A DNA stretch of 64,000 nt from sequence record AP018399.1; one strand, written 5' to 3'. The stretch's first letter is position 1; every line of letters begins with the position of its first letter. Below the pieces are notes generated by a model. That model searched no databases. It was not told where the DNA came from and was given only the letters and a program-made list of their open reading frames with translations. This document shows positions 28,407-63,605 of this stretch, piece after piece. The translations under genes were made by a program, and so were the position numbers.

Positions 28407-28515
28407 GGGAATGTAGCTCAGAGGACAGAGCGCAGGGCGAGGAAGGGACTGGTTTTCCACCAGTAAACCCATCCAATCTCAGAAGTCAGTGGTTCGAATC
28501 CATTCATTCCCACCA
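28407..28515 (+). ncRNA. tRNA-like RNA with 50-nt expanded anticodon arm
   Basis: perfect acceptor GGGAATG/CATTCCC-ACCA, normal D and T arms. Confidence 0.75.
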
Positions 28516-34171: not shown

Positions 34172-34247
34172 GGCCCGTTAGCTCAGCGGTCAGAGCAAGA
34201 GCCTCTAAAACTCCGGGTCGTGGGTTCGAATCCCACACGGGCCACCA
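34172..34247 (+). tRNA. amber suppressor tRNA (CTA), A73
   Basis: loop CT-CTA-AA; acceptor GGCCCGT/ACGGGCC-ACCA. Confidence 0.85.
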
Positions 34248-34254
34248 ATCAAAT

Positions 34255-34330
34255 GCTTTCGTAGCTCAGCGGTCAGAGCAAGAGCCTCTAAAACTCCGGG
34301 TCGTGGGTTCGAATCCCACCGAAAGCGCCA
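34255..34330 (+). tRNA. amber suppressor tRNA (CTA), G73
   Basis: same 58-nt body; acceptor GCTTTCG/CGAAAGC-GCCA. Confidence 0.85.
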
Positions 34331-34980: not shown

Positions 34981-35105
34981 TGGTAGGTAAGCAAGTGGGC
35001 AACGTAAGACGGCAATGGTGTAGGTATCCGTGAGGTATCAGAGTACGGTTGAGTCTCCCAGAAACCGTTTCAACTTCGTGAGTTCGAATCTCACCCTACC
35101 AGCCA
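34981..35105 (+). ncRNA. 125-nt tRNA-like RNA with large insert in the anticodon region
   Basis: TGGTAGG/CCTACCA-GCCA, canonical T arm, Tyr-like D region. Confidence 0.7.
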
Positions 35106-35112
35106 ATTCTAT

Positions 35113-35177
35113 GCACAGGTTACTTGGAAGCATCCGGTTGCGCACCGTGATGGGTGGTTCGATACCACTTCTGTGCC
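35113..35177 (+). ncRNA. D-arm-reduced tRNA-like RNA (GCG loop), no encoded CCA
   Basis: GCACAGG/TCTGTGC; CGG-TTGCGCA-CCG; GGTGG-TTCGATA-CCACT. Confidence 0.55.
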
Positions 35178-35191
35178 GCGATTCGTATAGT

Positions 35192-35339
35192 ATTCTGATG
35201 GCGAAATAGGTAGACGCGGGGGTCTAGGCCAATATGGAGAAGGGAGCTAAACATTCCCTCTGCTGCTCATGGTCGGAAACTGCTGTGAAAGCGTTGCAGC
35301 AAAACGCTGACCGTGTGGGTTCGACTCCCACTCAGAAAT
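35192..35339 (+). ncRNA. Leu-type tRNA scaffold with ~97-nt core
   Basis: TGGCGAAATAGGTAGACGC D arm, GTGGG-TTCGACT-CCCAC T arm, TTCTGA/TCAGAA acceptor. Confidence 0.65.
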
Positions 35340-35351
35340 TACTATATAACA

Positions 35352-35418
35352 GTATGGTCGTAATCCCTTTAAAATGAAGGGCGTTCGGACGCGGGTTCGA
35401 TTCCCGCCACGTCCACCA
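35352..35418 (+). ncRNA. ssrA: tmRNA acceptor piece (circularly permuted gene)
   Basis: TTCGGAC-GCGGG-TTCGATT-CCCGC-CACGTCC-ACCA; pairs with GGGCGTG at 35533 including G3-U70. Confidence 0.85.
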
Positions 35419-35532
35419 CATGCATCTTATAGCCAGAACTGAATCTGGTAAGAGGTAGTCAGCCACATTGAACCTTTCAGTAGAGCGCTGACCTAAGTCG
35501 CATGTAGTAACCCGCTTTAGGGTGCAAGTGAT

Positions 35533-35760
35533 GGGCGTGCCAAGGTTTCGACGGGCGAAGATAGTGGAGAAGGCGACTAGCCAGAGTAGGCTCTAAAACT
35601 AAAACCTAAAGTAACTGCCAACGCAAATACTTTCGATTACGCACTAGCTGCCTAATCCCAAGCACATCCAGCACTTGGTCACCGAACGCTGGGCAATAGC
35701 AGTCCTTGGACTGTCTATTGTGAAACATCTTCTGGTTCAGCCAGCCTAGGCAAAAGACGC
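35533..35760 (+). ncRNA. ssrA: tmRNA coding piece; tag ANANTFDYALAA* at 35617-35655; 3' end approximate
   Basis: GGGCGTG..AAGGTTTCGACGGG 5' end, PK1 (AGAG/CTCT with TAGG/CCTA), tag ending YALAA. Confidence 0.85.
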
Positions 35761-35762
35761 AT

Positions 35763-35852
35763 GGCGGTATGGCACTCCGCATACAGAGGGTGTATTCACA
35801 ATATGCAGTTCGTTATTGAGAGGAAATGTAGGTTCGATTCCTACGGTCGCCG
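35763..35852 (+). ncRNA. degenerate tRNA-like element
   Basis: canonical T arm GTAGG-TTCGATT-CCTAC, partial acceptor, possible CAC loop, no CCA. Confidence 0.4.
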
Positions 35853-35982
35853 CAGACCCCACTATGCTGGTCTGTGAAAAACAGTCGATATGGGTTAATA
35901 TGGAAAACGCCTCTCATCTTTCAAATAGGAGTTGACAATGAGCATTGTTTTTGCTACTATGTCGGCTTCTGTAACAAGCTAC

Positions 35983-36176
35983 GCCCTTGAGTAAGACAGT
36001 CAGGGAGTAAGCTCTTAATGTGAGCATGGTCGCCCCCACCTTTTGATAGGCTAGCCGGGGAGAGGTTCGAATCCTCTAAGCACCGTTAGGCTGAGACGAA
36101 AGGACTACGTTGCGAAGCATTGCACGCCAATTCCGGAAACGGCTGGTAGTGTTAGCATCCGACTACAAGGGCACCA
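35983..36176 (+). ncRNA. 194-nt RNA with tRNA acceptor stem and ACCA end, internal T arm
   Basis: GCCCTTG/CAAGGGC-ACCA; internal AGAGG-TTCGAAT-CCTCT; own promoter at 35932. Confidence 0.65.
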
Positions 36177-36312
36177 AATTAGGTGTTGACAAACGAAGAA
36201 AGTATGGTAATATGTACTTCTTCACCGGTAACCACTGACGATTGGCCCACCGCAAAAGGGCCGAAACAGAGAGACACAAGCGAGTTTACCTCCTTCCTCG
36301 CCGTCTCCTGTC

Positions 36313-36347
36313 TGGTTTGACAACTTGAGTGCGGAAACAATCTCAAG
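36313..36347 (+). promoter_or_regulatory. boxA-like plus GCGGAAA hairpin, copy 2
   Basis: TGGTTTGACAA then CTTGAG-TGCGGAAACAAT-CTCAAG. Confidence 0.5.
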
Positions 36348-36349
36348 GT

Positions 36350-37110
36350 GGAATAGCGTACAGTGATGTGCGTAAAGTGTGGCCCGCTCAGGCTGCGCAC
36401 CATGCAAATGGCTCCATCAAACAAGCACCGACTCCGGGGCACGCCAAAAGTGTGTCACGGCCCTTGTGAAGAACCACGAGGGAACTTGGAAAAGGTGCCC
36501 GACAAGCTAGTCTTGGGACAACTGAGACAGTTTCCACCCGCAAAGTGGATTAGGGATGCAACACGGATACCAAGCACTAGTCAAGGTGTAGAACATAAGC
36601 ATGAGGCTGCAACCAAGTGCGATGTTCAGTGAAGTGGGACTGTTTAACAGGCAGAACCGCATATACAATCCGAGTAGCCGCAAGCGAAAGGATACAGGGG
36701 CGTGTTGTATTTGGTACTTCAAAAGGGTATCGAGCAACGGCAACACACGTCCTGAGCAACAAAACAACTTCATAGGTTAATGAAATTAATTAAACGCAAA
36801 GTTGTTGCCGGTGCATGATGAAAGTGACGTAATGCTTGACACGCAAGTGAATCAAGCCATTCCGAGGCTCGCAAGGCAGAGGGGTGTTGTGGGAAAGTCG
36901 CACGTTTGGGGTCGAACCCTTTACTGCTCGCAAGGCAGGCGGTAGACAGAACCATGAATAGTCATGCACGACAGTGGAAATGCCACCACTTTAATCTAGG
37001 CCGTCATGGTTGCTACTCACATGAGTGAGTGGATAACGGTAGAAACTTCGCTCGCAAGCGGAGTATAATGACCGGAAAGGTAACCAATCAATGCTGTAAT
37101 CTCAGGCAGG
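36350..37110 (+). ncRNA. large ornate ncRNA candidate (GOLLD/ROOL class); boundaries approximate
   Basis: ~750 nt with no codon-biased ORF, many GNRA hairpins, CTCGCAAG x3, inside tRNA cluster. Confidence 0.55.
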
Positions 37111-37388: not shown

Positions 37389-37467
37389 CGCGCGGTACAA
37401 TCAATATCGGCAGATGGGCACCCTCATAAGGTGTCGGTTGGGAGTTCAAGTCTCCCCTGCGCTACCA
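37389..37467 (+). tRNA. tRNA-Met/Ile2(CAT)
   Basis: CT-CAT-AA loop, unpaired 1:72, ACCA. Confidence 0.8.
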
Positions 37468-49815: not shown

Positions 49816-50415
49816 ATGACCCTCACCGGTCGTCTTGCTACCCTGATTGCTGCACTAGGCGTGTCAATCGTCGCTTTCAACCACTTCAACAAGCCCGAAG
49901 TCGTTGATATCTCTCACATCCAGCCTGTCGAAGTCCTTCCGGACCCCATTCCGGAAGCTGAAAGCGTGCTGGTTCAGCTTGACCAAGCCGAATTCGAATG
50001 TATGCGTGCCAATATGTACTATGAGGCCCGCAATCAGCGTTCGGATGAAGCCTACATCGCAGTTGGCTACACCGTTCTCAATCGCGTCGCTTCCAAGCGC
50101 TACCCTGACTCCATCTGCGGTGTCATTTCGCAGGCACGTCGCGATTCGAAGGGCAATCCCATCCGCCACAAGTGTCAGTTTTCGTGGTACTGCGATGGCA
50201 AGCCGGACGTTCCGAATCTGAACAATGTTTTGGAACGTCGTGCTTGGGAGCGTGCAACCGAACTTGCCGCACAAGTGATGCGGAATGAAGTTGACAATCC
50301 GATTGGAAACGCTACAATGTACCACGCTACTTACGTCAACCCGCACTGGAAGCGTGCCTATCACAAGGTCGCGACCATCGAAACCCACATCTTCTACTCC
50401 CAAACCAAGGCTTAA
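49816..50415 (+). CDS. SleB-like cell wall hydrolase (Hydrolase_2)
   Basis: CMRANMYYEAR, VLNRV...YPDSICGV, CQFSWYCDG, YHATYVNP.W, THIFY. Confidence 0.92.
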   Translation: MTLTGRLATLIAALGVSIVAFNHFNKPEVVDISHIQPVEVLPDPIPEAESVLVQLDQAEFECMRANMYYEARNQRSDEAYIAVGYTVLNRVASKRYPDSICGVISQARRDSKGNPIRHKCQFSWYCDGKPDVPNLNNVLERRAWERATELAAQVMRNEVDNPIGNATMYHATYVNPHWKRAYHKVATIETHIFYSQTKA

Positions 50416-63171: not shown

Positions 63172-63516
63172 TTAAGACTTGTCAACACTTTCAGACATGG
63201 CTTTCAGTGCAGCTTTCTCTACCTTGCGAACGTGCAACCATACACGCACCCACTTAGGCAGCAACACCACACCGACTACAGCACCAATTCCAAACAGAAC
63301 AGGAATGGCACCAATCGCCAACGGCCATAGGAACGCCACCACAGCAGATAGGACGATACCCGTGACGACTCCACCCCAATGGGTACGCTCACTGTTAAAC
63401 TCATGGACAAGCCAACCTGTCACCAACAAACCAACAATGAAAAGCAACCAGTTGAACCACTCATTGGCAGTCTGGAAATTCGATGCGACAGTGAACCAAG
63501 CTTCGGGTGAAAACAT
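63172..63516 (-). CDS. membrane protein
   Basis: 3 hydrophobic segments. Confidence 0.7.
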   Translation of the reverse strand: MFSPEAWFTVASNFQTANEWFNWLLFIVGLLVTGWLVHEFNSERTHWGGVVTGIVLSAVVAFLWPLAIGAIPVLFGIGAVVGVVLLPKWVRVWLHVRKVEKAALKAMSESVDKS

Positions 63517-63605
63517 GAAAAGGAATCCTCTTTTGATGCTGACAATTATAGGGCACAAAACCAACTCTGTCAAGCACGCATCCGCCAGCCAGTAGAGGGA
63601 CAGTC

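Follow-up and report, generated by a model that had tools for sequence, protein, structure and literature searches.

The Xanthomonas jumbo phage XacN1 carries an intact, permuted ssrA gene of the betaproteobacterial type in each of its terminal repeats, and this gene probably serves ribosome rescue and protein tagging during infection, as one part of the phage translation kit. The 64,000 nt stretch of DNA analyzed here (the window) comes from the XacN1 genome (AP018399.1, 384,670 bp, host X. citri), to which the query region is 100% identical at two match sites. Window coordinates equal the record coordinates minus 1875, and are used below unless stated otherwise. Since the window lies within the left 65,875-bp direct terminal repeat, the tmRNA gene is present twice per genome. 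All XacN1 tRNA genes are found in the terminal repeats, and the tmRNA gene sits inside their array, with 28 tRNAs predicted in the window (ARAGORN). We take XacN1 to be a virulent phage.

Both the GenBank record and the XacN1 paper list 56 tRNAs and no tmRNA. The record has no feature at the tmRNA position, leaving a 2.5-kb stretch from ORF088 to a tRNA-Gly gene unannotated, and the paper never names tmRNA, ssrA or SmpB. This annotation gap can now be corrected, as the seemingly empty stretch holds the tmRNA, a GOLLD RNA and several tRNA-like elements. The two-piece tmRNA of XacN1 is already known as a catalogue entry, being listed as 'Permuted' in Table S1 of Buchholz et al. 2022 (PMC9004378), which gives host and topology only. 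New here are the anatomy of the gene, its beta-type affiliation, two syntenic relatives, the genome-wide absence of smpB, and membership in a viral clade with distinctive tags.

Anatomy of the permuted tmRNA gene

The preliminary description of this DNA had proposed a phage-encoded, permuted tmRNA, in which the T arm/acceptor/CCA half (to 35418) lies upstream of the 5' half (from 35533), and had suggested ARAGORN and Rfam searches as a check. These gave a consistent picture. ARAGORN called a permuted tmRNA at 35326-35746 (+) with the tag ANANTFDYALAA*, and two Rfam models matched over their full length and above their gathering scores: RF04321 (tmRNA_permuted) with 123.2 bits (gathering 47, E 1.4e-23) at 35356-35655, and RF01850 (beta_tmRNA) with 107.8 bits (gathering 84, E 7.7e-32) at 35302-35721, model positions 1-331. 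RF01850 was the best match retained in clan CL00001, ahead of the alpha and cyano models. The permuted order is evident from direct reading of the sequence, with the CCA end at 35418 and G1 at 35533. The features of the gene are as follows.

35356..35418 (+): acceptor piece of the predicted two-piece tmRNA (RF04321 alignment, sequence, and pair conservation in 97 viral relatives and in the XacN1 sublineage)
35356-35360 (+): P2 distal strand, acceptor piece
35365-35369/35377-35381 (+): local hairpin, acceptor piece
35382-35387 (+): P2 proximal strand, acceptor piece
35391-35407 (+): T arm, stem 35391-35395/35403-35407 (sequence)
35408-35414 (+): acceptor 3' strand, CACGTCC (sequence)
35415-35418 (+): discriminator A35415 and encoded CCA 35416-35418 (sequence)
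35419..35532 (+): intervening segment, 114 nt, separating the encoded CCA from G1 of the coding piece
35533..35721 (+): coding piece (RF01850 alignment to 35721; ARAGORN to 35746)
35533-35539 (+): acceptor 5' strand, GGGCGTG (sequence)
35540-35551 (+): D-loop analogue
35552-35557 and 35574-35578 (+): P2 strands, coding piece
35579-35582/35589-35592 (+): first stem of PK1, AGCC/GGCU, with a 6-nt loop (Rfam alignment)
35617..35655 (+): tag reading frame; resume codon GCC 35617-35619, peptide ANANTFDYALAA, stop TAA 35653-35655 (ARAGORN)
35658..35692 (+): PK2, an H-type pseudoknot (sequence)
35658-35662 with 35674-35678 (+): PK2 stem 1
35668-35672 with 35688-35692 (+): PK2 stem 2
35694..35720 (+): 3' hairpin of the coding piece, 6 + 5 pairs with a bulged U35714 (sequence, Rfam)

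All seven pairs of the acceptor stem formed by GGGCGTG and CACGTCC are canonical, including G35535·U35412, the G3·U70 pair already recognized in the preliminary description. The T arm carries a GTTCGANTC-type loop, and its five stem pairs are likewise canonical. Conserved structure stops at 35720/35721, and the 3' limit of 35760 given earlier is unsupported. A scan for promoters and terminators found no convincing sigma-70 promoter or intrinsic terminator at the gene ends.

Co-folding of the two pieces by free energy recovered the acceptor stem and the T arm and did not recover P2. The gain in energy on association (-9.5 kcal/mol) was no better than that of shuffled sequences (-8.8 ± 4.1 kcal/mol).

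Several further RNA elements surround the gene. A GOLLD RNA, unannotated in GenBank, occurs 1 kb downstream of the tmRNA at 36695-37108 (RF02032, 227 bits, full model), and is 74% identical to the copies in the Stenotrophomonas jumbo phages CM1 and RAS14. Near to it is a second conserved block (36176-36377) with a promoter-like site at 36186-36213, which suggests that the GOLLD RNA starts close to this site. Just upstream of the tmRNA is a conserved, 148-nt tRNA-like RNA (35192-35339; 2333-2491 in locus L002) in which 73 nt are inserted between a D-arm-like region and the T-arm region. Xanthomonas phage Xoo-sp13 has a copy with 81% identity and two compensatory changes in the acceptor-like stem. 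The element has no Rfam match, and was called by ARAGORN with the intron option only (tRNA-Cys ACA, intron of 73 nt). Other low-scoring tRNA-like elements flank the tmRNA at 35018-35105, 35113-35177 and 35740-35853 (relaxed ARAGORN only). Rfam also found tRNA matches at 28407-28512 and 37390-37462 that were missed by default ARAGORN, one of them 106 nt long, and the published count of 56 tRNAs may be incomplete. Upstream of the tmRNA are tandem amber-suppressor tRNAs (CUA) at 34172-34247 and 34255-34330, labeled Pyl by ARAGORN and Sup in GenBank. These are conserved in Xoo-sp13, CM1 and a metagenome contig (L341, see below), and CM1 adds a UUA (ochre) tRNA. The motif ACAATATGCA, with two occurrences in the RNA-gene gap and one in L341, is not enriched in the window (six matches against 3.8 expected).

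Syntenic relatives and a clade of viral tmRNAs

Two relatives share the position of the gene. The closest is L341 (metagenome contig JACCDJ010454453.1), with 122 and 121 bits against the two Rfam models, and the other is Xoo-sp13, where a permuted tmRNA was missed by ARAGORN and scores 65.7 bits with RF04321. In all three the tRNA order is Sup-CUA, tmRNA, Gly-UCC, Leu-UAG, Glu-UUC. The gene is conserved under purifying selection: compensatory changes among XacN1, L341 and Xoo-sp13 affect pair 5:68 of the acceptor stem, three pairs of the T stem and four of P2, together with the first stem of PK1 and the second stem of PK2. The 3' hairpin is nearly identical in L341, where the bulged U35714 is a C, and in Xoo-sp13 a hairpin of other sequence occupies the same position. 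Divergence between XacN1 and L341 is mosaic. The P2-PK1-resume region (35552-35616) is identical over about 65 nt, and the T stem, acceptor pair 5:68 and D-loop analogue (35391-35414 and 35540-35551; compared with L341 2650-2720) differ at many positions, a pattern that suggests recombination or very uneven constraint inside the gene. More distantly related to XacN1 (by rIIA) are the Stenotrophomonas phages CM1 and RAS14; the syntenic array of CM1 has the GOLLD RNA and no tmRNA within 12 kb. Ralstonia phage RsoM2USA, the reported closest relative of XacN1, was not among the matches in the phage collection, and its paper does not mention a tmRNA.

The pseudoknots differ in how well they are preserved. 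The PK1 of the preliminary description stands as far as its first stem, which in Xoo-sp13 has a compensatory change (C-G to U-A) and an A-U to G·U change. For its second stem at most three pairs can be drawn by eye in XacN1 (35585-35587 with 35598-35600), and no convincing one was found in XacN1, L341 or Xoo-sp13; relatives in the main viral clade can form it (by eye, from the alignment). No block is better conserved between XacN1 and Xoo-sp13 than PK2, whose stem 2 shows a compensatory C-G to U-A change in Xoo-sp13. Across 36 viral relatives, stem 1 of PK2 is 94.6% canonical with double changes at four of the five pairs. The exact PK2 block has no match in IMG/VR, and in metagenomes it retrieved one true relative (L341) and one chance match, a 21-specified-base PK2 pattern at 2309-2330 of contig L340 that lies inside an apparent coding region with no surrounding tmRNA.

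ARAGORN also supports the tag frame that was read earlier, running from GCC35617 to TAA35655, with 12 codons between the resume codon and the stop. Of the codon changes that separate the L341 tag, ANAETFDYALAA, from that of XacN1 over these 12 codons, four are synonymous and one is non-synonymous, and the 65 nt upstream of the tag are almost identical in the two. Mostly synonymous change in the tag despite such near-identity upstream is the signature of a translated frame. The Xoo-sp13 tag, DNVDSFDFAMAA, is in the same register. The tags of viral permuted tmRNAs fall into two length classes, 10 aa and 23-33 aa. Of 100 such tags, 65 have ALAA at the end and 42 start with A-[NKT]-[AT]-[DNS]-T-[FYN]-[DEK]-[FY], for example ANANTFEYFETHVALNDERFELAA in a 383-kb viral contig. 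The codons of this head vary synonymously (GCA/GCC/GCT, ACA/ACT, TTC/TTT, TAC/TAT), and it is kept with such variation in 18 distinct viral sequences. In XacN1, ANANTFDY corresponds to the viral head joined straight to ALAA; the head is conserved in L341 and more loosely in Xoo-sp13. The view that the XacN1 tag is degraded or aberrant did not hold, given that its YALAA end is canonical and that the viral clade has the head as a conserved signature. The tag strings were absent from the literature searched.

The intervening segment behaves quite differently. Its length is about 36 nt (L341), 114 nt (XacN1) or 147 nt (Xoo-sp13), and among the viral relatives lies between 4 and 273 nt. Its sequence is not conserved and has no match elsewhere, and it folds slightly better than shuffled sequences (z -2.4). 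That neither length nor sequence is conserved indicates a dispensable segment, as fits one that is discarded, and its removal during maturation is expected. This, together with the Caulobacter precedent (see below), points to a mature XacN1 RNA of two pieces.

The gene belongs to a larger group. At least 120 IMG/VR contigs matched the 5' motif GGGCNTGCNNNGGTTTCGAC, about 100 of them ARAGORN-permuted tmRNAs, and a T-arm motif added about 35 more. When the 5' motif was searched in 185,579 bacterial and archaeal species genomes, the at least 120 matches listed included two tmRNAs, both one-piece, and no permuted one. This shows a strong enrichment of tmRNAs with the motif in viral contigs, which is less than proof of their absence from bacteria. 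All 20 viral loci sampled match RF04321, and 14 of them pass the beta model RF01850 (94-144 bits, with the XacN1 score of 107.8 in mid-range); none came out as alpha or cyano. Across 97 distinct viral relatives, G3·U70 is invariant (97/97), and pairing is 99.9% canonical in the acceptor stem, 100% in the T stem, 99.5% in proximal P2 and 92.9% in distal P2, compared with 14-80% in partner-shifted controls. Double compensatory changes are found at four of five T-stem pairs, six of six proximal P2 pairs and five of five distal P2 pairs.

XacN1 has all of the features that define the clade: its 5' end is of the form GGGC-N-UGC…GGUUUCGAC, the acceptor piece contains a local hairpin, PK2 follows the tag, and the tag has the frequent head AN-x-x-TF-D/E/K-F/Y. 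A tree based on the tRNA-like domain and P2 divides in two with 100% SH-aLRT support and places XacN1 with the local-hairpin, long-tag members, among which finer placement is unsafe as the XacN1 branch is long (0.35) and Xoo-sp13 is especially unreliable. The pseudoknot behind the tag is common to the clade. Most clade members end with a hairpin and a U-run (an intrinsic terminator), unlike XacN1, L341 and Xoo-sp13, which have no U-run at this position. In the viral loci L004-L123 and L251-L339 the tRNA-like domain is near-identical, and the tags belong to either length class, with ANADTFDFSAMSFTGNTVSGKSKVALAA as an example of the 23-33 aa class. Many viral loci adjoin nrdA/nrdB/glutaredoxin or rIIA/rIIB genes, and several of the contigs are 200-380 kb in length. 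A candidate partner protein, a 199-aa protein that recurs beside the viral tmRNAs (49816-50415 in the window), proved to be a cell-wall hydrolase (PF07486), and its co-occurrence is due to shared phage backbone genes (nrdAB, glutaredoxin, rIIA/B, PhoH).

The full-length match to the beta model and an architecture common to a large viral clade indicate that the permutation was inherited, and speak against the independent permutation that had been considered earlier. The other option raised at that stage, that the permuted form is a clue to the host, fares no better. Permuted tmRNA genes are known from Alphaproteobacteria, one betaproteobacterial group and Cyanobacteria, and the known host, X. 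citri, is by the literature outside these groups, so the gene form is no host marker. XacN1 thus represents a two-piece, beta-type gene in the phage of a host that is expected to have a one-piece tmRNA.

Proposed function and alternative explanations

As noted in the preliminary description, the window contains no smpB. A tblastn search with E. coli SmpB extended this to the whole XacN1 genome (best E 0.7) and to about 120 viral tmRNA loci. The best weak match, an ORF at 63172-63573, belongs to no Pfam family. SmpB matches were obtained in 73 phage records, mostly of other groups. In the absence of a phage copy, the SmpB of the host would have to serve; in Xanthomonas albilineans, smpB adjoins ssrA (PMC10269729). 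Elsewhere in the XacN1 genome, the annotation includes a CCA-adding enzyme, a 2'-5' RNA ligase and a glutamyl-tRNA amidotransferase-like protein. Outside the window it also encodes a ClpP-family protein, ORF177 (record 86288-87001; PF00574, E 1.8e-18), located among replication genes, and a PTH2 peptidyl-tRNA hydrolase of the archaeal/eukaryotic type, ORF295 (record 174042-174458; PF01981, E 1e-33). These two proteins could be linked to ribosome rescue and the turnover of tagged proteins.

By analogy with Caulobacter and E. coli, host tRNA-processing enzymes would cut the XacN1 transcript, with RNase P cleaving before G35533 and 3' trimming proceeding to the CCA at 35418, and the 114-nt spacer would be discarded. 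Seven acceptor-stem pairs and both P2 helices would hold the pieces together. As for the outer ends, low-scoring tRNA-like elements lie on both sides of the tmRNA (35192-35339 upstream, 35740-35853 downstream), and their processing could set these ends in XacN1; L341 has no recognizable upstream element (by eye), so this would not be a general mechanism. Host alanyl-tRNA synthetase would then charge the RNA by way of G3·U70 and the discriminator A, and host SmpB and EF-Tu would deliver it to ribosomes stalled on broken messages, assuming that Xanthomonas SmpB fits the beta-type domain. Translation would resume at GCC35617, appending (A)ANANTFDYALAA, and the YALAA end would pass the product to Clp-type proteases. 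In E. coli, whose tag is AANDENYALAA, the determinant for ClpX/ClpA is the YALAA end, the classical ClpXP-type ending. The XacN1 tag has the same end, and degradation targeting is therefore expected to be retained. Together with the 28 tRNAs, the CCA-adding enzyme and the peptidyl-tRNA hydrolase of the phage, the tmRNA would supplement ribosome rescue, to the benefit of the phage, at a time when host mRNA is being destroyed by the infection.

The conservation of the tag head invites a more specialized reading, in which the head (A-N/K/T-A/T-D/N/S-T-F-D/E/K-F/Y) is recognized by an adaptor of the phage or the host and tagged proteins are routed differently from those bearing the host tag, possibly to faster turnover for amino-acid recycling, or away from the host proteases. 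The presence of the head in 42 of 100 viral tags, its maintenance through synonymous changes, its conservation in XacN1, L341 and (loosely) Xoo-sp13, the bimodal tag lengths of the clade, the ClpP-family protein of XacN1 and the absence of the tag strings from the literature searched would all fit. However, no adaptor was identified, the ALAA/YALAA ending is canonical in 65 of 100 tags, for which ordinary Clp targeting suffices, and the head could owe part of its conservation to RNA-level constraint just past the resume codon. Specialized tagging is unlikely. The need of a phage without smpB to compete for the SmpB of its host could also point to a decoy, an RNA that titrates host SmpB (or AlaRS, or EF-Tu) and so shuts down host trans-translation, as has been proposed for the RNA of mycobacteriophage DS6A, which consists of a tRNA-like domain only (PMC4131195). 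Such a domain would be enough for a decoy, but in XacN1 conservation extends beyond it to the resume region, an open 12-codon frame that ends canonically, PK2 and the 3' hairpin, and the tag frame evolves by synonymous changes, making this explanation very improbable.

Still harder to credit is a decaying passenger, either a horizontally acquired gene without function or the leftover fragment of an attachment site. The gene went unannotated, has neither a terminator nor a clear promoter that could be found, and is missing from the syntenic region of CM1; yet it is complete rather than a fragment and has kept its place in three genomes that have diverged, its helices all show compensatory substitutions and its frame is unbroken, and the XacN1 record has no annotated integrase. 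The preferred reading remains a tmRNA that would act in ribosome rescue and tagging during infection.

A bolder extension of this reading is that the XacN1 tmRNA is a cultured, tractable member of a virus-specific two-piece lineage that is essentially absent from bacteria, and whose tags share a conserved head (AN-x-x-TF-D/E-Y/F), in many cases in tags of 23-33 residues, that serves a separate function. We consider this unlikely; if true, the tag head may be an adaptor or protease signal, and rescued proteins may be treated differently from those of the host system. The part most worth pursuing is the occurrence, in more than 100 viral contigs, of near-identical tRNA-like domains with very different and often very long tags, and XacN1 is an isolate in which deletion of the tmRNA gene and tracking of the tag are feasible.

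Comparison with known two-piece and phage tmRNAs

Known phage tmRNAs were regarded as one-piece in the preliminary description, a view explained by the 2014 list of phage tmRNAs, which is one-piece throughout (PMC4131195). This no longer applies, as Buchholz et al. 2022 (PMC9004378) counted 133 distinct phage tmRNAs, 53 of them two-piece. Besides XacN1, Table S1 of that study also has phages of Stenotrophomonas, Bordetella, Citrobacter and Pseudomonas. The catalogued two-piece examples, which include those of Melnitz, HTVC008M, Mosig, phiCbK-like Caulobacter phages and cyanophages, resemble XacN1 in being permuted ssrA genes of lytic phages for which an adjacent smpB is not reported (PMC9004378).

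The XacN1 gene is unlike these examples in lying in a duplicated terminal repeat, within a 28-tRNA array, and the phage itself is from soil rather than water. Melnitz is an OM43 phage, and HTVC008M and Mosig are Pelagibacter phages. The tmRNA genes of Melnitz and the pelagiphages were placed in the alphaproteobacterial lineage, whereas XacN1 scores as beta-type, and some of them have a glutamine riboswitch (PMC9004378), none of which was found for XacN1.

A close structural counterpart is the betaproteobacterial two-piece tmRNA (RF01850), with which XacN1 shares the gene order of acceptor piece, spacer and coding piece. The match also covers a single pseudoknot region ahead of the tag, clear in XacN1 for the first stem of PK1, and a pair of helical elements behind the tag. 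Sharkady and Williams reportedly described the betaproteobacterial form in 2004. XacN1 departs from RF01850 in its acceptor stem (GGGCGUG, against the consensus GGGGGUG), in the replacement of mid-P2 by the local hairpin of the acceptor piece, in a much longer spacer (about 100 nt aligned to a region of 13 positions), in a tag head that differs from the ANDE-type consensus, and in its carrier, the phage of a gammaproteobacterium.

The template for the processing proposed here is the tmRNA of Caulobacter crescentus, for which a permuted gene, and the splitting of its precursor into two base-paired RNAs that function in tagging, were established experimentally (Keiler, Shapiro and Williams 2000, as cited in PMC9004378). 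That gene differs from the one in XacN1 in being chromosomal, of the alphaproteobacterial lineage, and accompanied by a cognate SmpB in the same genome. As for carriers of similar kind, phage ssrA genes are also found in other large phages with many tRNAs, such as the Bxz1 group of mycobacteriophages, Bacillus phage G and DS6A (PMC4131195). The Bxz1 group and phage G have the standard gene order, and DS6A has no tag frame, whereas the XacN1 gene is permuted and its tag frame is complete.
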